Assembly (NCBI RefSeq): GCF_040938485.1
Contig: NW_027272185.1
Location: 310,001 to 374,000, forward strand
Length of the DNA stretch: 64,000 nucleotides
Source: Diadema antillarum
Taxonomy: Eukaryota
Direction: 5' to 3'
The position numbers and the translations under genes were made by a program. The number at the start of each line of letters is the position of its first letter. Positions within the stretch are counted from its first letter, which is position 1. This document shows positions 1 through 43,000 of this stretch, piece after piece. Below the pieces are notes generated by a model that saw only the letters and a program-made list of their open reading frames with translations, made no database searches and was not told the DNA's origin.

Positions 1-117
1 TTTGCTGGTTCTTGAGGCTGTACAGAAGCCAAAGTAAGTACTAAAAGACTTCCATAGGTTGTCAAATATTATTAAACAGGAGATATTGCAAATATGTCTA
101 GATGGATTATATGATAG

Positions 118-216
118 AGGTCTTGATGACCTAATAGATGAGATGAAGATGTTTATATTTTTGGTCTTGATGACCTTGGAGTTCTTGGATGTTGATGTTA
201 GTGGTCTTGATGACCA
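118..216. repeat. Three copies of the 13-nt hairpin GGTC-TTGAT-GACC
   Basis: Exact copies at 119-131, 163-175 and 203-215 separated by unrelated sequence. Confidence 0.75.
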
Positions 217-1069
217 GTGACCTTGCACTGATGATGCTATAGATTCTATGAATGTTTCAAGTTTACTTGATTCAATGTGATAGAATGTTTCTAGTATTAG
301 AAGAGAGGAAGATAATATGACAAGTCAATATTGCATTTCAGAATGATGCCATGGAAGATATTTTCGTTCGTAATGTGATTTCCAAGACGAGAGTCAGTTC
401 TGATGTATGCGCTTTTATACTGGCTTTATAATTCCAAATTTTATGCGAAGCTGTAAATTAAACATGGTTCAGGTCAAGCTGACAGGTAGGCCGACTGCCA
501 GTGGCGGCCGTGTTTCTTGGTCCATATTCGAGTCAAGGAGATCACAGTACGAGAATTTATGTCTAGAAAGTTATGAACAAATTAGTAGAAAGAACGGAAC
601 AAGTAAAATGATTCATAAGACTTATTTTCTTCACATTTATTTGACAACAAACAGCACCTAACCATGTGGAGGCATAGACGATGGAGGGTTAGGGGTGTTA
701 CGTAATTATTTGAATCTTTTGGCAATGTACCATAAAATACAAATACAATGAATTCTCAATAACATTATGGTACATTTTCTGACGTTATTACGTCAACTTG
801 CAAGTAAATTCATATGCCAGAGTATCTCAGGATAGGATATGTAGAGACAGGAATATAATTTGGAATTGTATACTGCATTGACAAAAATAGATTATTTCTA
901 GTGCACGCAAATTTTATATGTATTTGAGAGTACACGGTACTCAGTATCTGTCATTAGAAAATGACAGCACCTAGGTTGTGAATGATGAGTCAGTGATACA
1001 TTGTTAGATATCTCCCCCCCCCCCCGACCTTTACCAACATCCCGACTTATTACATTGTACGTGGACAAC

Positions 1070-1468
1070 TGTTCATCGTGAAGTAACAATCCTGAACAAG
1101 GAACGTTACTGGTACCTGTGCAGAGTTATATCTATCAACGGGTCATCGTGCATTATACAGTAACAATCCTGAACAAGGAACGTTATTCGTACCGGTGCAG
1201 AGTTTCCCGCCTGCATACACAAGCATCCATCGAATAGTCTTCATGTTCATACAATGACAATCCTGAATAAGGAACGTTATTTGTACCTGGCGTCAGAGTT
1301 ACGGTATCTCATCTAGTAAGCAGTGTTCATCATCCCTATTATAACAATCCTGAACAAGGAACGTTATCTGTACCGGTGTAGAGTTCTCTCATCTGACAAT
1401 GCCGCTGGTCAACATGCATCGTACGGTGACAATCTTGTGTAAAGAACGTCACTTGCATCACTTGTACC
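1070..1468. repeat. Array of five conserved 27-nt stem-loop units with divergent spacers (candidate structured ncRNA array)
   Basis: Hairpin cores at 1083-1109, 1160-1186, 1254-1280, 1341-1367 and 1426-1452; periods 77, 94, 87 and 85 nt; conserved tail GTACCNGTGCAGAGTT after units 1-4. The repeat is directly visible; function unknown. Confidence 0.85.
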
Positions 1469-2966
1469 TGACTTGTGCATTTTACTGTAACCCCTTTATT
1501 AGGTACCACTGTCTTCGTTATGAAACCTTTTGACCTTGACCTATGACTGAATTGACTTTCTCATGTTAAGATGAGAAATTGATGACATTTGATGTAGTCA
1601 TCCGAGTTATTCCCCCCCCCCCCATACATTTCGAGAGCATTGACTCTAGTTGTATTTGTAGTATTGCTATGGATCTATTCATTGAATTGTGCGGAACTAA
1701 AACGTGACTCGTGACAGAACAGAATAGTGTGAGATTATTATAATGAATTCTGTTCCTGGTATACAAATTTTTACGTATAGAAACAATTGTCATGGACCAG
1801 GTTGAACACAGAACGTTGTGCTAGGAATAAGCCTTTATAAGTGAGCAACACAGGAGGTAAAATCTCGAGGCTGTGTTTGCTTAGGAGAACGTATAAAATA
1901 CTGGTAGTTGTATCAGATCAACGGAACGACTGATAAACTCATAATAGTATTGGGCAGGAAGAGTGCCAGTTCGAATCCCAGTAGAGACGGTGGAGTGGTC
2001 GGGTACGAGTGGAGGAACGTAATATTATTTTTGGAGAACCGGTTAACTAGGTGCTGGCGCTTAAGTTGGAGAGAGAAGGTTTTGAAGAGTTATAGAGAAA
2101 CTATCCTAGTCACTTGGATTGAATTGTTCGGAAGACCGACGAGTATATGTAATAGGCCCCTCGGAGCACGGCAATGGTTATGAAGGATAGATACAATTTA
2201 GGTGAAAGTCACAAGCCCAAACGTTGATAGTGTCATTATTTATGTACGAGTCTATGATTTTGGTATTATTTCTTCTGAGTTCCATAGAGCCGAGTCACAA
2301 CCGCACTTAGGGTAAAGTAAAGTAGGTATTAAGTAAGTAAGAGTACTAAGATTTTGGAAGTTGTACATACAACTGTAAATACGTTAAACTGTAAATACGT
2401 TAATAAAGCACATTTGCATTGGATTGAGAATTACTCAAATTTTCCAGTTTCCAAACAGACAATTCTATCACTGTACTTGCCTGGTCATGCTGTGAGTGTG
2501 ATTGTTTGGTCGTGTGAGTTGAGAAGCCCATGTCTTGTGCTGTGTCAGTTGTATTGAATGCATGATGTGAAAGCATAAGAAGTAGTTTTAGTACGTACGG
2601 TATGGTAATTAATAATTTCAAGTACAAACGTTCGCCTTCAACGAACGGCCCCCCATCGAAGTTTGGATGCCTTGTCAAGTTACATGAGGAGGCTGTTGGT
2701 TAGGAACTAAGGAAATTCTATGCAATAGAGGAAAACAAGGGGAGCTGTCTGAGTGTGTGTTCGATTGGCAATGTGTGACGATGATGATGATCAGACTGCT
2801 CGATGTTCAAGCACGTGTGTACATATGCATGTGTGCATGAATGCGTGTGTGCATCTCGAGCATGTTCTGTTGAATCTAATGACTTATGCACGGTGAACAA
2901 TTAGTTATCATAGAATGTCAGATCGTGGTTGTCAAACATTAGCAACTTCTTAGAAACAGAACTCAC

Positions 2967-3200
2967 CATTTACTTGAACAGATGTATACTGCAAATTTTC
3001 ATATAATGGTTGAATTACGGTGAGTTAGCTCAGAAATTTGGCACCATGACGAGTTCGGCCGTAGTAGGTTCACACAGTCACAGCTACAGACCACAGATTG
3101 AATAGCTAGCACATGTATTAAAGGGCGCCAGCTCTAGCCAATCAGAGCACTTGTAGCATTGAGAGAGGTAAAGCTGAGTTTGGCGTTTGGCTATTGGTTG
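2967..3200 (-). promoter_or_regulatory. Putative promoter and first exon (ending in ATG) of a minus-strand gene running off the left edge
   Basis: CCAAT at 3138-3142, ATTGG at 3193-3197, TA-rich box at 3116-3122, consensus donor ATG|GTGAGT at 2967/2966, and a good acceptor (TACTTTGGCTTCTGTACAG) giving an exon start at position 17. Motif-based only. Confidence 0.3.
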
Positions 3201-3445
3201 AGCCTGTAGTTGCTATTCTAGCTGGATGACAACCACCCCCCCCCCCTCGTATTTGATTTCCTCAGAGTTTCTTTGTGTTGTATTGATTGACATTCACTTA
3301 TTGTCTTTCGATAAGGATTCATACCCCTGAAAAGTATGTGGTGGCAGCAAGTTACGAAAGGAGGTTTATTAATGGTTGAGTGGCTCATCAGACAATCTTA
3401 TTTCTTTACATAGGGGCCAACAACAAACCCCCTCCTCGCGTCACA

Positions 3446-3446
<1 letters not shown>

Positions 3447-3476
<30 letters not shown>

Positions 3477-3489
3477 TATATATATGTGA

Positions 3490-3528
<39 letters not shown>
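3447..3528. repeat. Compound (AT)n-(GT)n microsatellite; other microsatellites at about 11300-11385, 11805-11857, 18547-18612, 19370-19415, 27830-27871, 31918-31969, 57901-57975, 60176-60235 and 62765-62803
   Basis: Directly visible simple-sequence repeats. Confidence 0.95.
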
Positions 3529-3531
<3 letters not shown>

Positions 3532-5205
3532 ATTGTGGGTACCTAAGTAGACCTACTGAAAAAGGGCAAATTCATACTTCTCTTTCCAATACCTACCAGC
3601 CAAATGACGCCACTGAAACACGACTGCGTGTCGAAACTGGAGCGTCAATAACTGTCTATCTTTGACTACAAGGTAACACGATGTGGTAGTAAATTGCAGT
3701 AATGTACAGCGTGAGCTCTGTAGTCTCACAATGCTTGTGCATAGTGGTACAGTTGAATGTGTGTGTGTATGTGTGTGTCTGCGCGTGCGAGCGTGCGTGT
3801 AGATAGGGCTAAATGTGGCGTAATTTGTTGGGACAGAAGAATTGAATATCCGCCACATCCCTCCTCCACTTTGTATTAGAAGATATATATGAAGAACTGG
3901 TGCTATCATTTTTTTTTTTCATTTCAAATGATCTTCTCAAAAGTAAACATGCTTCGTCAGATGCAATTTTGCTGAATCTGTTGACGTGAAAGAAAAAAAA
4001 AAAGACCTGCACACAATGTATTCAGATACTTCTTCTTAGTTCACAATGGTTCCATTTTTGCAGTCAGGCCCAACAAGGACATTTAAATCGAAATGAACTT
4101 GAGCAAGAATTCAACGCATTCATCATTACGCTTGAACGACATTTCACAAAAACTCGTATTCAAATGTTTCAGAAGTACCCCTCTCTCATTCACTGTATCC
4201 AACATTCTTTTCACAGTAACAAGTGTGTAGGAAAGGAGGCAGCAAACACTCGTCATGATTGTTAAGTATTTTAATGCCGAACTGGGTTGAGGCACTGTTA
4301 CAAAAAGCAACAACAAACAAACAAGGTTGTAAGAAGTGTGTATGTTTGTTCCTGTTTTATTGTTTGACTTTTTTTTTCTTGAACACATATCACAAGAAGC
4401 ACACTTCGTAAGAGAAAAAAAAAACACCACATAATCTAATCTTATATACTGTTGTCAAGACCGTCTTTCTTTACACGACGAGGCGTTCCGAATCGCGTGA
4501 TTTTCATAAAAATCTACCATCATTATCGGCAGCATAGCGGCAAGGAACCCCTTGGTAATATCGGGCGGGAAGCCATGATGATTCAACTTATTCTATTCAC
4601 AATACACTCATTGTACGACGTGTTGTACGGAACGAATAACAGAAATGCGTAGTCAACATACAGCTCCAACGGTACAACATCTCCCTGTCTGGTCTGACAC
4701 CACATGACTAATCTTTATTGCTCTCCTCAAAAGTTGAAGTTGTGTTTAATCAGTGAGAGGGGTATGGAAGATGAAAGGAATTTCCAAATAATTTATTGGG
4801 TATTTGTGAAAATCTCATATACACCAGTTTGTTTGTATTTTCTGGTCCTTTCTATCTAAAGTAAGGTCATCAAGGGATCACTACATTGTATGTAACAATG
4901 ATTGATATGAAATATTATGTACTGCAGGGTGTGATCAATTGGTAGTAAGAAAGTTTATAGGAGCAATGGAAGATTTAAAACTTTAAAAAGAGCCTCTATA
5001 ACGATGACCAATCAAACAACAACAAAAGCTGTCTCCAAAACTGAGTAATTATAGCAGCATTCTCACTTGAGTAGCAATTCACAGTATTGTTTCTAAACAA
5101 TATTGTATTGTATATGATATGATATCGTACGCCAGTCGTACTGACCGCAGTAACATTGAAACATTCTGTCGAAACTTTGTTGGAAAAGGGCAGATGCATA
5201 TTCTG

Positions 5206-5636
5206 GGCCCTGTTGCATAAAACCCTTACCGCTCAGGGCCGGCGCACTGTTTTCAAAAGTGTGGGGGCCCACTTCCGGGTTTCATGAGCTAACAAGCAAA
5301 AAAAAAAAAAAAAAAAAGGTCCTCAGCTCATTCTCTCCCCTCCCATTGTAGTGCCTCTTACGTACTTCCGGGTTGAAAAAAGTGTGGGGGCCCAAAGTGA
5401 TGACACCTTATGTATTCCTTTGTATGGTGCACAAAAAGTGTGGGGGCCCGAGCCCCCACGGCCCCCACGGCCCCCACGGCTGCGCCGCCCCTGCCGCTGG
5501 ACTTACCGCTCCTTTCTAGCGGTAAGTCTTCAAATTAGCGGTAAATTTTATAATCCTTGATGCTGATTGGCTGTGATGCCTAATTTTGACGGTAATTACC
5601 ATTGAAATTCAATGGTAAGTTTTATGCAACGGGCCC
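5206..5636. mobile_element. MITE, probably PIF/Harbinger type, interrupted by a second element
   Basis: TIRs GGCCCTGTTGCATAAAAC.. / ..GTTTTATGCAACGGGCCC; 3-bp TSD CTG (5203-5205 and 5637-5639); subterminal TTACCGCT repeats. Confidence 0.75.
5234..5493. mobile_element. Short GC-cored non-autonomous element (CAGGG...CCCTG ends) nested inside the MITE
   Basis: Ends CAGGGCCGGCGCA / TGCGCCGCCCCTG; perfect 5-bp TSD CCGCT (5229-5233 and 5494-5498). Confidence 0.8.
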
Positions 5637-6159
5637 CTGATCTCTGTATTGCACCGTAGTGAAGTTTCATGTTATCGTTGCAATTCTTCACCATGTTTCG
5701 ATTCCTTTTGTCATTTAAGTTCATCGATTGTTTAGGCTTGTTTTTTCTAGAGCTTACCATGCGTCCCGAGTTTCAGTAAAGTAGGCCCTATGGCTCTCCC
5801 TTCAATTTAAATTCCGCCCCTGACCAAAAATAAAAAAAGCATGATAGGTGATCCAATATCACAAGCAGCGCCGTCCTTCACTGCAACGAAGACGCTGCAC
5901 ACACGGAGATTGTCGAACTTGAACCAATACATCGATGACGCCATGTTGATTACGAATTAATCAAGTTCTTCTTCTAGCGACACTTTTGGAGGCCTTCCCG
6001 ATTCACCCATTCAGATCCATTAGTCATCCATTTTATTTTTCATTTCTATTTCTTTCTTGATATGTGTAGCTTCCCAATTTATGGGGTCTCACCTCAGCTG
6101 CCACACTAGTCCTTGCCTTACCGGGAACATTTCAAAAGGTAACCTTAAGTCATATCTAC

Positions 6160-7264
6160 TTAGGAGAGATATTTCTCTGCGATCCTTCTGAGATCTGCTT
6201 CGATTAAGATCTTCTTCAGTTTCTCCCTGTTGTCGAGTCCTTGGCGATTCTTCCAGGCCTCCAGTGCCCGGTACGTGGCCTCCTCGGAGTCGTTGGCGCA
6301 GCTCATCAGGAACGAGTCCAGCTTGGCCTTCTCGAGTCCCAGTTTCAAGCCCAGCGGGATGTAGTAATTGTGCGGCACCTCACACGCCATTTCCCGAAGA
6401 GTCTGGGCGGGAACGTCGTTCGGTCGGTCGTCATCCTGTCCAGACGGGCTGCAGTGAAAACAACAGAAGCGGAAAAATACATCTCCGGACATGACGCGCA
6501 GATGAGATATGGGAATAAACATTTCTAGGGCTGATGACTACTAGCCAGATACGTAGGCGTATCCATATCAATGGAAGATCTTGTGTTCGAATTCAGGCAG
6601 GCGCGTACATCTTTGGACAATGCTTCTTTCTTTGTTTGTTTGTTTGTTTGTTTGTTCGCTGGTAGGTGGTATATAAATCTTGACTCAAATATTATAGACA
6701 ACGATCTGGCAACCACAGGGCTATGATAGCTGACCCTGTGGACAAACAGTGCCTGGACTCAAAGGCAGCCCAGGGAAAAGAAGACCATTATCATAATGCT
6801 GCAATAAATGACCACCGCTGAGTGGTTAAGGTCAATATAAGAGTCATGAGTATACGCACACGAAAACATATGCATTTTGTTTGTAAACCGTTATGTATAT
6901 GAGACATTTGCATTCATGGAGAAGCTACCATGTGCTTACTTCAAATCGTTTTCGTCGGTTTCTCGAGCGTGCGTTTAATCTTTGACATACACAAGAATCA
7001 TAATGTCATAAACAGTACCTAGTACGAACACACAGCATGGCAATTGATATGAGCATAGATTAAGATTAGTATACATCTATACCCGTTATGAAAAGAATAA
7101 GTGGGGAAAAAGGAAGTTATAGCAAAGGATAGGAATGCATTCATAATATGCCACGCTCGAGAGATTATGACAAGATACCGGAGTTTGCAGTACTCACAAT
7201 GCTCCTTCGCCCTCTACCGTTGGGCTCAGAAAAGAAAAACTACTTTGACTAGATGTCCTCCGAC
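6160..7264 (-). CDS. Coding exons 10-11: Ser-rich spacer (7198-7264) and C-terminal death domain (6160-6448)
   Basis: LREMACEVPHNYYIPLGLKLGLEKAKLDSFLMSCANDSEEATYRALEAWKNRQGLDNREKLKKILIEADLRRIAEKYLS* shows the death-domain pattern (LG..LGL....LD.....; L..WK......; L...L....LR.IAE). Exon 10 (phase 1-2) resolves the phase mismatch between exon 9 and the DD exon. Confidence 0.85.
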
Positions 7265-11856: not shown

Positions 11857-14800
11857 CATTCATATACATATACATAAAATTATATCATATTTATATTACC
11901 GTCGTTTTTCTGGTTTTTCTTTCGTCTCAAGTAGCACAGGTCCTGTGTCACTGCTGAAGCCGGTGGTGGGGCCGGGGCCGGGGCCCGGGCCAAAATGTTT
12001 TGAAGCACTTTTGTTAGAACTGTCCTTCTTTTGTTTTTCTCCCTCATTCTCCCTTTTCTCCTGTTCTTTTCCATTTCTTGTAAATAAAAACAACGAAACA
12101 AAGACAACATGATGTTTTCCACTTCAATAATCTTCGACAACCTACCTATATTGTCGGCTAGACAGCACAAAATATCTTACACTTTCTTATGAAACACCAA
12201 TAACTATGTATTGTTAAAATCAGAATGGAAAGATAGAGCACCAGAAAAAAAAAATGAAGCCTGTAGAATGTTTGTTGAAGGAGGCTTGTAGAATAAAGAA
12301 AGAATAGTATACCCACATTACCTTATTTCCTGCGACTGATGTGAAGCGACATCAATTAAATGAAACATACAGAGCTATTGTACTCAGAACGAAACGCCAT
12401 TTTTTTTTTTATGTGGTGACATTATAGTTTAAAGTGTGAAGACTTACATGTCACTTGAAGTTTGTGTTCTGTCGGGTTCTTTTGCGTCTTGGTTGGTCTC
12501 CACAAGAACAGGTCCAATGTTCTGTGCTGTCAAGGTCTCAGCTGGAGGGTCCTTGTCTTCTTTTGACTCAATTGGCGTTTTCTTCTCACTGTGTGGAGGG
12601 ATAAGCAATATGTACAACTCCTTTCAGTGTTGCCGAATTTTGTTCGTTGATTATTTTGTTTGCAGTGAAGGAGGATCACGCATATCGTTTTTTTATTTCG
12701 GAAAGGATTATCACAATCATTTACCTGGATCAAATTTCACTATTTACCAAAGTGGTCTATCTTAAACATGGTAGATTCACGTGTACAAGAAAAAAAAAGA
12801 GAAAACGTGCCATGAAACTCCGTAATATAGTATACAAGGCCGGCAATTTATTGCCGGCCAAATGAAACATAATACAAATTTTTCAAATTCATGAAATTCT
12901 TCCGTTGAGGTGTTTTCATTAGGCGTTTTCTCATCAGCCCGATGTTTCGAAATAGCGCGCTATTTTCTGACTTGGGAAATTTTCCCGATAGCGAAATAGC
13001 GCGCTATTTGATAATGTGAACACAAATTAGCGCGCTAATTGTGTCGCTCTGATCGAGAAAATTTCTCGAGTCCAACTCGGGAAATTTCTGAAATAGCGGG
13101 ATAGTAGCGCGCTATTTGATAATGTGAAAACGACTCGATTAAATTAGCGCGATGCATCCCATCATGCCTAGCGTGTGTGAACCGATCGATCGAGGCAAAC
13201 TGCACACAAATCATGAGGAATTTTTGAGAGGGCACACACATTACTGATGCTGTTTGCTCATACTCAGCTGTCGAATTAGCTCGACAAAAATTCGGGCTGA
13301 TTCTCTTCGGGCTGATGTGAATAAGAAATGAAATAGCGCGCTAACTCGCAATCGCGAAAAATTTCTCGAGCTTGGATTTACATCGGGCTGATGTGAAAAC
13401 GCCTAGTGCAACTGGTTGTCAATCAGTTGCAATGATAACACAAATTGTTATGTTTCATTTTTTGTATATTCTTTTAACTCTGCTGTGTAAAGATTATGCC
13501 TAACCATGACAGTCTTAAGAACAAACAGCATGATTGACCGCATAATTTCATCGGAATGATCATTGTGACGATTGCAACAATGGGAATTATAATGATAGTC
13601 ATTATGCATTTTCCCCTTGGTGGGGGTAGAAAACGCATTTTTTTTAGTTGAGATCTAATCGAAAATTCATTCACAGGAATCACAGAGTTGCATCCTCTAC
13701 ATCTCCGCATTTACTGTTACAAATCATATGAGCCAAATGTCATAGCTCCATGGCAAATAAGCTCTACAATAACGGTTTAACCATCTGCCTCTCCTGTAAG
13801 GTCATTTTTATATAGAGTCATTCCATGCCATGCACTGTCTGTTCTCATTCGCAGTGAGTCAAACGACTTACACTTGTTCTTGACTGGTATCTCGTTGAGG
13901 ATTCTTAGGGTCGGAGCGGACCGCGTTGTCGGCGAACAACTTCCTCCTCGGACGTTTACCACTTGCCTCTCTTCCGGGCGTTTTGCTTTTCCTGAAAATG
14001 TTACATCATTACTTTGTTTAAGAATGGACAACATTAATTTCTGGACAGGAAAGCAGTCTTCATGAGAATGGAAGGATTATTCTCTCAAGACACATATTTC
14101 ATGATTATCATTATGGCGTGTAAATCCTTCTGGCGTGTATATTTCATGGTTATCCTTATTGCATTTGCAGTCAGTAGAGTGCACTAGACTTGACTGGGTG
14201 CATTTCAACGACACCAAATTAGAATTGATACGTGTGTGTTAAACCGTCTTCATGCAACAGGTAACAGGCGTCCTTCCTAAGATTGTTAGTTTAATCAATT
14301 TCTGAAAGTCACTCCAATAATCAGGATTAAGACAATTTTCCAAGCAACGCTTTACATGCTAGCTGTTTACTGTGACAAGAGCCTTTGTTCATATCTTGTC
14401 TGACAAGACACATAGATATAGATCAATCATCATCTGTGGGAACAAACAGGCACTTTCTGAGGTTATGATTGACAAATTATATCTCTATGAAAGTCTTTGT
14501 ATTCAAAGACCACCAAAGAGCTGTCTATGATCTGATCTGATTTTCAAGAGAAACGATGTGTTGAGGTGTGGATAATCATTACATACATATTTAAAGGAGA
14601 ATACCACAGACTTCGCAGTGCAACACATCAAAGTGGAAATAAACGACTCACTTGAGTCCTTCCATCATGGATTTGTAGATGTGTATGATGTTGCCCATCT
14701 GTATGATGAGATAACCAGCTGAAGACGTGAACAACGCCCTCAAACTTAGGATTGACATGGTGTGTGTGATTTTTGTTCGCCGGATCTCTTCGTAGCTGTC

Positions 14801-15478: not shown

Positions 15479-17989
15479 TTCCTCAATCTTGCCTCAAGCT
15501 AACATGCCGTCACAAAACGGAACGTCCTGTACAAGAAGGAATAAGAATAAGAACTTGTGGATTGAGATTCTATATCAAATAAACTTATCTATACCTTCTT
15601 CCTTACGATGTTAATTGATAATCCATGTCTAACAAGAAATTTGCGTGGCCCCACAGACTAATGTGATAAAGTTATTATCAGACTTGAAAACAGCTAGTGA
15701 GTTAAATGTTCAGCACAACCAGACAACATTGTACGTACTTTATTGAAGATTGTGGAAATTACCTGGACCTGATTGAATCGATGAACAATATTTTCGCCAA
15801 CGATTGCTTAGAAGGTACATGTATCATGTAGGCAAATGTTGATTTACTGCATTAATAGGCCCGCAACAAAATATTAATGGCGACTAAATCTATCCATCAA
15901 TAGCCGTATCATCAAGCTACTTTACTTGCCTGTGATTAGGCCTATAACGATACATGCTAAACAAACATAACACGATTGTAAATCGCTCCTTCATAAGTGT
16001 CCCGTCTCAAAGAAAAACATATAACTGTTGTGCAATTTGAACTGTTAATGTATCTGTCAATATAAACTATTAGACTTTCATCACAGAGGAGAAATGATTT
16101 ACAATTCCATGTATTGCCGTACGTGATATGTGACACACATTCATAATGACTACACAAAGCTAAAAAATCCTGCCAAGTAACCAACCCATGCATTTATTGA
16201 GATTGTTTCAGCTGCATGATTAGTTCGTATTTTCCGTTCCGAAGAGTTATGATTTCAGCTTCCATATCCTAAAGCAGTTATGAAACCATGATTCAATAAG
16301 TATAGGCAAACACGGGAAAGACAGATTAAGGCACTTGAAATGTATACAGATAGCGCTAAGACTAATGGCTTTCTATTTCAGTGCTACTCTCTGAAGTGAA
16401 ACGAAAGTGACAAATGTGACAGCTCACCGCTAAAGAGTGACGATGGGGATACTTACGATGGTCACGCTCATGGAACTAAAAAGCAGCGCATGACCAGCAG
16501 GGCGTCGAAATGTCATACATATTTATCCTCACCAGCAGGGATATTCACGAGACAACCATTCGTTTGAAAACATAGCGGTTTAACCGCTATAAACAAACAT
16601 TAACGGCGTGATCTCCATGCGGTTTTGTGTAGAGAACTTCTACGGCTTCTCCCTTTAGATTGGCCAGGTGAGTGAAAGGGCTATCGATCTGCACGGAATC
16701 GATGAAAGAGAAGAAACCAGCCAAGAAGTCGTGCTCTATTCAGGCAAACACAATAGCGCTAACCCGTCTGCTTTTGGACATCGCAAGCAACACACCTCGG
16801 TCCCTATAGCCATCTTCATGTGCCGGAGACAGAGGGTTAATTCCGAATAGTCCCGTCTGCATTGATTGCCGTCAGCACAACAGACAATATTATCAACATT
16901 AAAGACTGCGATAAGCCTTTAGTCGCTCCTCCTTTTTCAGGGACGGGCGCCGGTAAACAGACAATGACGTAATCCGTAGATACGGTTATTTCCCATGAGC
17001 AGAACACTATTTTAAGCGAGCTCATGTCATTTATGTTTATACACAATTCACAGCAGTGTTTTTGACTAATATACTCTTCCCCTATTCGTATCTACTGCGG
17101 TGTGTATACTTTACCCCTTCCCCCGTGACCCATGACTTACAAATGTATGTCATGCACCACGCCATGAGATACATCATGTATTTTGAAAGCACGACTTCAG
17201 CTCCTTCTCGTTTTGCAGGGGGTTCAAAAGTCTTAGTTTCAGACCAGCTTTGTGTGACAGCATTAAATTGACCTCCCTCCTATCCAAAAGGACTATGCAC
17301 CTTCCCCCTCCCCCTTTTTTAACTTGGCGAATACTAGGATGTATGTAATCTACAATACTTGTACTTTGAAGCAATATCCACATTAAATTGATAGCAATAG
17401 ACGGCGAATATAGCCAAGATTACGCCTAAATACCAGACTATCTTCTCTTTTTTCCCCGGCTACCTCACGCGGCGTTGGGTTATCATCATAATGTTCATCG
17501 TTGTTATCATCACCATTGTACTGTTCAAAGACATTTTCAGTCTTAAGAATGGTTCGGGGTATTTCATCCTTTACCTGTAACACCGGAGCCTGCAAATGCC
17601 TGACCGTAGGGCACTGGAGATGTAATGGAGGCGACTCTACTATTGTCATATCTGATGACAAGGAAATATCCCCGTATGAGACGGGACTTCTTTTGTATCT
17701 TTACAAAGGGGATATCATAAACGCAAAGGTTTGCATTGTTCACTTACCTCCGTTTGTCATCTGCGGTGCAAGGGGCAGGCCCACGGAGCAGAGTTATGAT
17801 TTTTTGTTCCACGCACTTCGGATTCAGAGGGCGCTGTTGGATTGGTACTCTAGCCTGATGATTTCCGCTATCTCCGTTACGGTAATCGATGACGTATAAG
17901 TTATAGTAACTGTGTGAATCAAAATCATGCGGGCGCGTAATAAGGTTTGTACTTCCTAAGGTTCAATTGTACGCAACTTCTTGTCATTT

Positions 17990-40082: not shown

Positions 40083-43000
40083 ATGGATCAAACCAAAAAG
40101 CCTTTGAGAATCCCTCCTCAGTTTGGAACGTATGCTGAAAGGCATGGCATATTTGAGCTTTACAAGGTAGGAGGTATACTTCCAAGATATCTGTTGTAAA
40201 AACTTGATAATTATTGAAGTTGTGCGTTGTTACTGTGTGTTGAGTGATATTACGGTCCCACCCGTTTAATACTGTGTGTGCTGTATTGTCATCGCAGCCA
40301 GAGTGGCTGGCCGTGGCTAAATCAAAGGCAGAGCCAAAGCCGTATCCCGAAATATCTGTTAATTAATATCAGACTATAGAACCCACTACCAAAATAAAAA
40401 TGAATCAGTAAAGATGTTTTTGAAAATCATAGTTTTGAAGTTTCCATTGGTTTGCAGAGCAGGCGCCGGGTTCTTTTGAGTAGAAAAGATGGGATAGATT
40501 TTACATAACACGTAAATTTATTATAGACTCTAACGTTAAATAATGGGGTCCATTAACTGTTACAATAGTTGTAGAATGATGACATTGTGGTCTGTGAAAT
40601 AGATAGGATCTAGACCATATTCTAGGGTCTAACAGGTACGGGTCTACCCCAAAATTAATGCCAAAAAAAAAAAAAAAAAAATGGAACATCTGCAGAATGC
40701 CCGTCACATCGTTGCACATAAATTTTAATATATGTGTGCTGGTTGCAATTACCATACCACTCTACACAGCTAAAATTGATTCTACCTTACCCTTGCTACA
40801 AGTGTAGCTTATGTATGGATGCACGTATGCATGCACCGCGCACATTCAGCTCATGACAGAATATTCTGCTTAGATATTCTGCAGTTAAGCCAAGAATTTA
40901 ATGTGACAATGACTGTTCACTTCAGATAATCAGAGTCAATCAGTCATGGCTCATGCTGTATCTGTTTAATGTTTAGCATTGGTAATTTACATACTATAAA
41001 TTTACCCGATATGGAACCAGCTGAAGTAGGTTTCTATATGTTGCTGCACATGTCCTGCTAGAGTCTACTTCTACTTCTACGAAGATACTCAGCAGGATCC
41101 ATAAGTCAGGATGTAGTGCTAAGATTTAGACAAGGTAGGGCCTATTAGCTTTTTAGTGTAAAAGCTGTTATTTTTGCTAGGGTTTAATTTTTGTGAATTT
41201 TGTGAAGCACTGTTGGTGTCGGGCCACTTATTTTACAACATGCAAAAATATCACCATGTACATGTATTCTACAGTAAAGTGGCAGAGTGAATGGACAGGC
41301 AGCAATTGCGCAATTACAATACATTACCCTTGGTGTCAGTTGAAAACATCAGTTTGCAAAAATGTCTGTGACCTCTTCATCCCTGAAAATATCTGTAGAT
41401 TGATGAAAAATTAAAATTTGTACAGTATATACACCCTTATAAGATTTAGCATTGTAAATAAATGTACATTACACAGCATAGATTGATGAAAAATTAAAAT
41501 TTTTACAGTATATACACCCTTTTAAGATTTAGCATTGTAAATAAATGTACATTACACAGCGTAGATTGATGAAAAATTAAAATTTTTACAGTATATGCAC
41601 CCTTTTAAGATTTAGCATTGTAAATAAATGTACAATACACAGCATCTAGATCTGACTTTGAATAGTGTCCTGTCAATGTTTCAAAGTGACACACCAATCA
41701 TTTGTCTCAATCTACAATAGACTGGCTATGTAAAAGCTTAGAAACGTCAGTATTATGCGCTATATAAGTGTTATATATTATTATTGAATTATCATTATCA
41801 ATTGAAAACATTTGAAATAATTCAATCTATAGATCTTTGTCAATCAAGACTATCAACTTCACTGATGTTCAGTCCTTTCTGTGAAAACATGAACGAGTGG
41901 ACAAGTGATGACATAGACTTCTGGAGATATTGTCATCCAGAAATGCAGTAGGGTTTAGACCGAAATATCATGTCTTGTCATGTATTGTTGCAATAGCTCT
42001 AAAGTAAGAATGACAATTTCTTACATTCTTTCTCCTTTCCCCCCTCTCTCTTTCTTGTGTATATGCCTACACACACCCTCTCCTTCAAATGTACATGCTT
42101 ACACTCATACAGCACTTGATCGAGGGACTGCTCGTAAGCAAACCACAGGATCCTCTTGAGTTCCTTCTCGAACAGCTGAAGAGAGACAACAATGACAGTA
42201 AGTTTATATTTTCTCTTCTCCTTCTGTGAATACAGATATACAGTGTATGTTGCTACCAAGTGATTATATGTGTTGAGTCATTGAGGGAAACTGTTCTTCT
42301 GTGTGACTTTTGTGTGATAAAACAAGAGGATAAATTGTCAGACCTGAACATATTATGTTTTGAGAGTGAGGAACATATCCATCTCATGATGTTCACAATT
42401 TTACAATTACCTCGGGATAATAGCCCGTGATCTAAAGGCAAGTGAAAGATATGCATACTGAGCGTAGCTTTTCATTTGTACGTGTAGAAAGCTACGAATC
42501 ATGTATATTTCGGTCTGTTACTTCTTACCTAACCTCTGACATGAGCCCACATTTGATTTTAACTGTTTTGATGTCAAGTGCTGTGTTCAAACAAATTTTA
42601 ATGAATGTACAAACCTTTCCAAAATAAATCTTGTCAAGAGGCCATACAATGTAAACAGTTTATGCAAAATATTGTCTCTCTTTCTCTCTGTGACTGCGAT
42701 GTTCTCGTAGCACCAGCAATCATCATTCATGGGCCCCCTGCCTCAGGGAAGACCACTATAGCCCGTATGGTGAGTGCCCAGCTGAGGGCGGCATACATCA
42801 GCAAGGAGACTCTGCTCTCAGATGATGTCTCGGCGGTGGCAGCCAAGGCCAAAGCCCACCAGGCAAAGGGAGAGGTGGGTACAAGTGTGGCTGAACTACG
42901 TCCTTGTCTCTGTTTGTCATCTTATTGCAGTGTCATGGAACATGCTACGACCCATTTTTTCTCTCTACTTTTCTTTTTCTTTGTAAAACAACAACCACGA

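Follow-up and report, generated by a model that had tools for sequence, protein, structure and literature searches.

Five tandem hairpins with compensatory stem changes in the probable long terminal repeat of a Ty3/gypsy retrotransposon of the sea urchin Diadema antillarum

Transport and packaging signals lie in the transcribed non-coding parts of retroelements, and the repeats of the U3 part of long terminal repeats (LTRs) are classically enhancers. Both the direct repeats of retroviral U3 regions and the Su(Hw) array of Drosophila gypsy consist of protein-binding cores set between variable spacers and present in variable copy number. Here we describe, in a 64-kb stretch of the Diadema antillarum assembly GCA_040938485.1 (the window), an array of five hairpin-plus-tail units that very probably lies inside the LTR of a Ty3/gypsy retrotransposon. 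U3 repeats and the Su(Hw) array resemble it in combining repeated cores with variable spacers in the non-coding region of a retroelement but act as DNA, without covariation of stems; the Su(Hw) array, moreover, is located in the 5' leader, and a binding factor for the Diadema array is only hypothetical. In LTR retrotransposons the non-coding parts often contain tandem repeats that vary in unit and in number, and these have been attributed to errors of replication (PMC7004042). The hypervariable repeats in the 3' untranslated region (UTR) of plant Tat/Ogre elements (PMC7004042) are similar to the Diadema array in forming a short array past the Ty3/gypsy coding region, with units of tens of base pairs and a unit content that varies between copies; the differences are the conserved 45-nt hairpin core, saturated spacers and compensatory stem changes seen here, the echinoderm host and the position of the array inside the LTR proper. 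In layout, conserved hairpin cores separated by diverged spacers, the array also recalls the A-repeat of Xist, a multivalent protein-binding RNA with about eight short hairpin cores and spacers of 21-48 nt that have diverged from species to species (PMC2796953); the two are unrelated in sequence, and Xist has U-rich spacers and is a host long non-coding RNA (lncRNA) with a known function. As far as we could find, the Diadema array is a new example of the short tandem arrays of Ty3/gypsy elements, in an echinoderm element that is apparently undescribed, and its conserved, covarying hairpin core is unusual among the known arrays of this kind.

The five units lie on the plus strand and were located by direct reading, by pattern search and by a repeat search, which agrees with the five cores and gives periods of 77, 94, 87 and 85 nt (Table 1). 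The conserved module is 45 nt long, a 27-nt hairpin followed by an 18-nt tail, GTACCNGTGCAGAGTT, which is present in units 1-4 and carries a 2-nt insertion in unit 3. Unit 5 is the most diverged repeat, agreeing with the others at 18-20 of the 27 hairpin positions, and has a 9-nt local duplication and a degenerate tail displaced to 1464-1479. The spacers measure 32-49 nt. A degenerate pattern of the core gave five matches against 0.25 expected by chance; a match at 15733 has no stem and was dismissed as fortuitous. No copies beyond the five units were found within the window by blastn, pattern search or the covariance model R1, and the tandem repeat program TRF does not detect the five-unit array. 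The original prediction, which had presented the array as CRISPR-like, is thus reproduced in most of its descriptive part: it had given five units with these periods, and its sequences for both stems, for the invariant AA/AC internal loop and for the tail of units 1-4 agree with those found here.

Table 1. Coordinates of the hairpin array and of the associated features. Positions are those of the window; negative values lie to its left.
Feature	Position	Strand	Remarks
Tandem array, five hairpin-plus-tail modules	1070..1483	+	LTR positions ~1699-2112
Five hairpins, first to last	1083-1452	+	LTR positions 1712-2081
Hairpin 1	1083..1109	+	outer stem GTAAC/GTTAC, loop GAACA
Hairpin 2	1160..1186	+	terminal pair G.U on plus, A.C mismatch on minus
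Hairpin 3	1254..1280	+	G.U at pair 3, loop GAAUA
Hairpin 4	1341..1367	+	
Hairpin 5	1426..1452	+	two compensatory pair changes, loop GUGUA
Tails, units 1-4	1110..1127, 1187-1204, 1281-1300, 1368-1385	+	
Degenerate sixth unit	1475..1520	+	pre-hairpin block and GTAAC...GGTACC kept; ~11 unrelated nt replace the hairpin
Second palindromic-core array, same LTR	119..215	+	GGTCTTGATGACC three times, exact: 119-131, 163-175, 203-215; spacers diverged
CCAAT box and inverted CCAAT box	3139..3196	+	~250-300 nt before LTR end; candidate promoter region
Probable 3' LTR of Ty3/gypsy retrotransposon, window part	1..3445	+	whole LTR 4,074 bp
LTR start TGTGGCG	-628		629 nt to the left of window base 1; L004:26107 on the L004 minus strand
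LTR end CGTCACA	3445	+	homology to L005 lost at ~3443
(AT)n(TG)n microsatellite	3446..3529		abuts LTR end; homology to L005 resumes here
Integrase open reading frame	-3729..-2398	+	443 aa; domains Integrase_H2C2, rve, Integrase_p58_C
Integrase and ORF3, span	-3729 to -1366	+	L004:26845-29208 (minus strand of L004)

On the plus strand all five units adopt the same shape, an outer stem of 5 bp, a 2x2 internal loop, an inner stem of 4 bp and a loop of 5 nt, with folding energies of -6.2 to -7.8 kcal/mol and z-scores of -2.5 to -3.6. RNAalifold recovered this hairpin from the five-unit alignment and found no extra conserved helices with the tails or spacers on either strand. In the five-row alignment every stem cell (45 of 45) pairs on plus, and three of the nine pairs are altered on both sides. 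Observed pairing and double changes were matched in 14 of 500 column shuffles, and in a neutral simulation, run on a plausible unit tree with substitution numbers as observed, every pair was retained in 0.0002-0.03 of the trials, the value varying with transition bias. One-sided stem changes occur in two cases and both produce G.T on plus, never A.C. The minus strand loses outer pairs of units 2 and 3 to A.C mismatches, so that full pairing is confined to plus, the strand that the original prediction had mildly favoured. Its claim that selection acts on an RNA fold is plausible: pairing is kept in all units on plus, and unit 5 has two compensatory changes. The support, which comes from five related sequences, is modest.

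A control for these observations is available in the window itself, in a DNA element resembling a miniature inverted-repeat transposable element (MITE), located at 12910-13410 in the region of the neighbouring ZU5 gene. It is bounded by terminal inverted repeats, GGCGTTTTCTCATCAGCCCGATG with its complement, and contains five to six copies of a perfect 16-nt palindrome, AAATAGCGCGCTATTT, irregularly spaced between 12950 and 13347. One of the palindromes is changed on both arms (AATTAG...CTAATT) and two others have a broken arm. This means that matched changes of the arms are not unique to RNA and, equally, that unbroken pairing is not automatic.

The loop variants GAACA, GAAUA and GUGUA all conform to G-N-R-n-A. 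Such a GNRA-like pentaloop, in which one base is looped out and which is read by protein, is known from the boxB RNAs of phages (PMC12550061), where, as here, a short stem closed by U-A carries it. The resemblance to boxB is one of loop pattern only, since the Diadema hairpins belong to a eukaryotic retroelement and have in addition a 2x2 internal loop and an outer stem, and as the pattern was spotted post hoc it counts only as a lead. A more elaborate fold, an H-type pseudoknot between the loop and a complementary 5-mer upstream of the hairpin, had been part of the original prediction and is not supported. The upstream TGTTC is part of an inherited block, TGTTCATCGT, so that units 1, 3 and 4 count as a single event; the partner in unit 5, TGCAT, is 2 nt out of register with this block and requires two G.U pairs, and in unit 2 only three of the five positions pair. 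A fully complementary 5-mer within 25 nt upstream arises in 24% of shuffles for unit 5 and in 20% for unit 3, which places the complementarity at chance level, and RNAalifold gives the hairpin alone.

Divergence is very uneven along the unit. Identity among units 1-4 is 85-96% in the hairpins and about 75-89% in the tails, whereas the spacers are 45-61% identical, compared with 47 +/- 5% for shuffled spacers. The spacers nevertheless retain residual common blocks, TTCATCGT and ATCTCATCT, from which it follows that the units arose by duplication, in agreement with the old tandem duplication proposed originally. Uniform divergence along the unit, which marks an ordinary minisatellite or variable-number tandem repeat, was not found; it is displayed, by contrast, by an ordinary tandem repeat at 41395-41645, whose three copies of 83 bp are uniformly 95% identical.

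Natural variation in the array was seen in contigs of public runs. In organism A the stretch is present as one tiled set of even depth, accompanied by a minor contig with an extra unit, and organisms B and C carry it at an identity of about 96-97%. Positions 1384-1568 are represented by several variant contigs and, compared with positions 805-1006, the array has 3-6 times the word depth. A different 74-nt segment separates hairpins 1 and 2 in organism B, and its hairpin 3 reads ATAAC, with an A in place of the G of the window's G.U, which converts it to an A-U pair. Across 1269-1452 organism B differs at seven positions, six in spacers and one in a tail; the chance that none of the seven would fall in a hairpin is about 0.045 by simple arithmetic. 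Outside the array, positions 1594-1776 are covered by several short variant contigs in the organism A run, which indicates that they are part of a repeat family more numerous than the remainder of the LTR.

Such variation in unit content, the extra unit of organism A and the 74-nt segment of organism B, is one of the grounds for regarding the array as a functionless, minisatellite-like LTR repeat, one that strand-transfer or slippage errors would have produced when the element replicated; the apparent conservation and pairing of the core could then be put down to chance, short-tract conversion or hairpin-templated "palindrome correction". The frequency of such repeats in LTR retrotransposons (PMC7004042) and the degenerate edge units that lack a hairpin are compatible with this explanation, which we consider improbable. 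It leaves hairpins that are 85-96% identical next to spacers that are demonstrably homologous, through TTCATCGT and ATCTCATCT, and yet at the random level; conversion limited to a 45-nt core is unlikely, and palindrome correction should have removed the invariant AA/AC asymmetry of the internal loop.

The nature of the surrounding DNA becomes apparent just beyond the left edge of the window. The ZU5-gene locus taken with 10-kb flanks (L004, contig JBFRCO010001297.1; window position = 25479 - L004 position) extends the window leftward by 3,840 nt, to window -3840, inside an integrase. The integrase open reading frame, just outside the window, is on the same strand as the array, about 3.5 kb upstream of it, and its closest relatives are Ty3/gypsy polyproteins. 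The original prediction had noted that no cas or reverse transcriptase gene is adjacent, which is correct within the window and fails at this integrase; the reverse transcriptase itself would lie beyond the sequence examined. Next to it a second plus-strand reading frame, ORF3, encodes a 328-aa protein whose N-terminal part has two C2H2 zinc fingers and which continues into a long tail rich in K, E and R; exact protein look-ups of ORF3 and P0002, and a search for a death-domain exon, returned no match. At 737 nt past ORF3 the motif TCGCTGGGACAGCGATT is followed by the purine run GGAGGGGGA, by caa and by the TGTGGCG that begins the LTR. The LTR accordingly starts with TG, ends with CA and is preceded by a polypurine tract.

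The right end of the element is marked by a second copy of the locus (L005, contig JBFRCO010000147.1 of the same assembly), which is 98-99% identical from an MFS gene through the ZU5 gene to about 3443-3530 and unrelated to the window locus over its remaining 7 kb. The last bases of the unmatched segment are CGCGTCACA, directly before the (AT)n(TG)n microsatellite, and no array is present beside the second copy. L004 and L005 are either haplotigs or a very recent segmental duplication that differ by insertion of the retrotransposon at the microsatellite, and the insertion is thus polymorphic for presence, in L004, and absence, in L005. Differences between the gene models explain why the ZU5 proteins annotated in the two copies share only 85% identity. 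In the copy without the retrotransposon, a perfect foldback (hairpin) element of about 300 bp, with (AT)n on both sides, occupies L005:21960-22260. The gypsy element itself is apparently intact and recently inserted.

Comparison with other sea urchins supports these boundaries. Related Ty3/gypsy elements have integrases about 70% identical in protein sequence and the order gag, protease-reverse transcriptase-RNase H, integrase, ORF3. A full-length relative from Strongylocentrotus purpuratus (L007:2617-15922, AAGJ06000842.1) consists of a 6.5-kb interior flanked by two direct repeats of 3,425 bp, 99.8% identical, which are its LTRs. Ahead of its 3' LTR lie TCGCTGGGGACAGCGATTT and a purine run; the LTR starts with TGTGACGG and ends with a C-rich tract and CCGTCACA. 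The Diadema and S. purpuratus LTRs have in common the motif before the polypurine tract, a TGTGNCG start and a C-rich...CGTCACA end, and because both ends align with the S. purpuratus LTR pair, the Diadema LTR can be placed between window positions -628 and 3445 and measures 4,074 bp. LTRs of 3.4-4.1 kb, the lower value being that of S. purpuratus, are unusually long for animal Ty3/gypsy elements. Directly upstream of the polypurine tract, at L004:26123-26140 (minus) and L007:12470-12488, there is a small motif that can form a hairpin, TCGCTGGG(G)ACAGCGATT. It is conserved between the two species, whose LTR interiors are too different to align, and may act in cis in connection with plus-strand priming. 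The relative in L. variegatus (L006:1-22083, CM031016.1) is a head-to-tail tandem with a period of 10.26 kb and 99.6% identity, in which about 4.5 kb of non-coding DNA separates ORF3 from the next gag. Over 98 aa, the finger region of ORF3 is 30% identical between Diadema and L. variegatus and retains its Cys and His residues; this conservation indicates that in the gypsy clade the env position is taken by a zinc-finger gene. Two database entries turn out to be parts of these elements: the "uncharacterized protein LOC115925941" of S. purpuratus is the integrase/ORF3 region of the L007 element, and the "stress response protein NST1-like" of L. variegatus is an integrase C-terminus fused to ORF3.

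With both LTR ends mapped, the array is very probably a tandem repeat internal to a transposable element, an outcome that the original prediction had itself named as counting against it. A host element unrelated to the retrotransposon, be it a CRISPR-like array, an array of polycistronic small RNAs or of ribozymes, or a portion of a host intron or lncRNA, has become hardly credible. In appearance the array is indeed one of repeats and spacers, and a donor-like AAG|GTAAGT at window 34 lies downstream of a TATA-like, promoter-like stretch. The array is situated, however, between the mapped LTR ends, in an interval across which the assembly annotation calls no gene; it has no other copy in the window, and the whole segment is absent from L005. 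With CRISPR arrays it shares the layout, hairpin-capable repeats and spacers of 32-49 nt, and it differs from them in its non-identical repeats, its homologous spacers with shared residual blocks, the absence of cas or cas-like genes and its location inside the LTR of a retrotransposon in an animal, a sea urchin, so that a CRISPR array was rejected. No curated covariance model of Rfam matches the array on either strand: a search of Rfam 15 with window 1-4000 at E <= 10 gave nothing over the array except SNORD35 at E = 5.5, and a scan of 10 kb of L004 at gathering scores gave no match on either strand. The proposed identities as a host polycistronic small-RNA or ribozyme array, or as processing signals that release the spacers, are not supported, given these results and the location of the unit inside the LTR.

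Several other candidates were considered and set aside. Terminal inverted repeats around the array, expected if it belonged to a DNA transposon, were looked for and none were found. The neighbouring minus-strand gene, matched through its first exon to an annotated protein, encodes a product of 804 aa (P0001) with ZU5 and Death domains, and its 3' UTR is unlikely to reach the array, as the first minus-strand AATAAA lies about 120 nt past the stop codon and the LTR intervenes. A "direct repeat" of poly-C flanking the array (1006 / 1605) is attributed to chance because C/G runs of at least nine bases occur 18 times in the window; the C or G mononucleotide runs of 9-21 bases (18 in 64 kb) often adjoin A/T runs or CA repeats, and their frequency appears to be a general feature of the Diadema genome. 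The core pattern was not found in metagenome contigs, three lone matches in viral contigs lack the outer stem and are due to chance, and a literature search for the core sequence found nothing. ARAGORN called no tRNA in window 1-6500; a B-box-like GTTCGAATCC occurs at about 1965.

Within the LTR the array is roughly midway between the start and the CCAAT-box region, about 1.7 kb from each. In both Diadema and S. purpuratus the LTR has a CCAAT box about 300-340 nt from its end, with C-rich tracts after it. Judged from sequence, this suggests the usual layout, in which U3 is long and R-U5 short; the promoter would then be near the LTR end and the array in U3. Near the start of the same LTR there is a second array with a palindromic core, GGTCTTGATGACC, which is one mismatch away from an inverted repeat of the oestrogen-response-element (ERE) type. 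Three of the five TGACCTTG (CAAGGTCA) motifs in the window fall inside this LTR, within 1.6 kb, at 171-178, 218-225 and 1531-1538, and TGACCTTG motifs overlap or adjoin the GGTCTTGATGACC copies of the second array. The GGTCTTGATGACC and TGACCTTG sites may be binding sites of the nuclear-receptor type.

These motifs bear on the main alternative function, namely that the five units are U3 enhancer repeats read as DNA. The 27-bp imperfect palindrome with its tail would then be the site, or a composite site, of a host transcription factor, and the potential to form hairpins a by-product of palindromic sites that drive the element promoter. We regard this as less likely than a role as RNA, though it accounts for several features: the array is upstream of the CCAAT-box region near the LTR end; the near-ERE GGTCTTGATGACC triplet and three of five TGACCTTG motifs share the LTR with it; the positions of the internal loop are invariant in sequence, as expected of a site read as DNA; unit number varies between haplotypes or copies, which is usual for enhancer repeats; and a change on both arms is seen also in a DNA-transposon palindrome within the window. 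On the other hand, a single protein binding all five units provides no cause for matched changes of the two arms, and retention of all pairs by chance is estimated at 0.0002-0.03. The half-sites, at 11 bp, would be permanently asymmetric (AA versus GT), and the one-sided changes yield G.T on plus and never A.C, albeit in only two cases. No known factor motif could be identified; Sox, Otx, ETS, Myb and steroid half-sites were considered and dropped, none of them fitting all units.

The explanation that we favour, with a probability of about 0.45, is that this LTR-internal tandem repeat represents a set of repeated protein-binding RNA hairpins that act for the element. Retention of the module while the spacers drifted points to a cis-acting element of the retrotransposon; under this hypothesis selection on the element would keep the 45-nt module and leave the spacers free to diverge. 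An array located in U3 would be copied into the 3' untranslated end of each plus-strand transcript of the element, and the five stem-loops, read through the invariant AA/AC internal loop and the G-N-R-n-A pentaloop, would form a multivalent platform for a protein that might act on element RNA in export, stability or packaging. Since the array region would be transcribed as element RNA, a role on plus-strand RNA is possible, and one that serves the element rather than the host. The presumed transcript strand of the element is also the strand on which all stem pairs hold. A more specific version, in which a boxB-like GNRA-pentaloop platform in the U3/3' UTR is bound by the element's own protein, either Gag or the ORF3 product, a two-zinc-finger, highly charged candidate that is conserved in this gypsy clade of sea urchins, is distinctly improbable as it stands; such binding would control export, packaging or stability of the element RNA, and the hairpins would be a novel type of RNA cis-element of retrotransposons.

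A number of observations weigh against an RNA-level role in a defined LTR. The covariation is based on five related sequences and was noticed post hoc. In the public runs that hold the stretch it is represented by contigs throughout, none of them recorded as RNA. The original prediction had proposed related echinoderm genomes as a place to search for further copies; neither the S. purpuratus nor the L. variegatus relative yielded a hairpin to the covariance model R1. Between the three species the LTR interiors cannot be matched up in an alignment, and the non-coding or LTR regions of the two relatives contain only unrelated short repeats. The threefold GGTCTTGATGACC array is more like a set of DNA-binding sites, which favours a DNA-level reading of the region. 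A second promoter-like region, with CCAAT, a GC box and TATAAATA, is present at window -250 to -90. If the start site were there, the array would belong to R/U5 and would still be transcribed, as leader, so that in either case it is expected to be part of the plus-strand element transcripts, as 3' UTR or as leader. Finally, no 5' LTR, target-site duplication or U3/R/U5 borders were seen, the sequence examined ending inside the integrase.

What appeared to be a CRISPR-like array in an animal is thus explained away as part of a mobile element, and the case illustrates how the edge of a window can conceal the context that decides an interpretation, the integrase lying just outside it. The interest that remains is modest but real: a gypsy element with long LTRs, a zinc-finger ORF3 and, within the LTR, hairpins with compensatory stems. 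If the array acts as RNA, it would offer a compact example, easy to test, of a transport or packaging signal in an echinoderm retrotransposon. If it acts as DNA, it would constitute a five-fold enhancer cassette that is scattered by insertions beside host genes, in the present case 4.7 kb from a death-domain gene.

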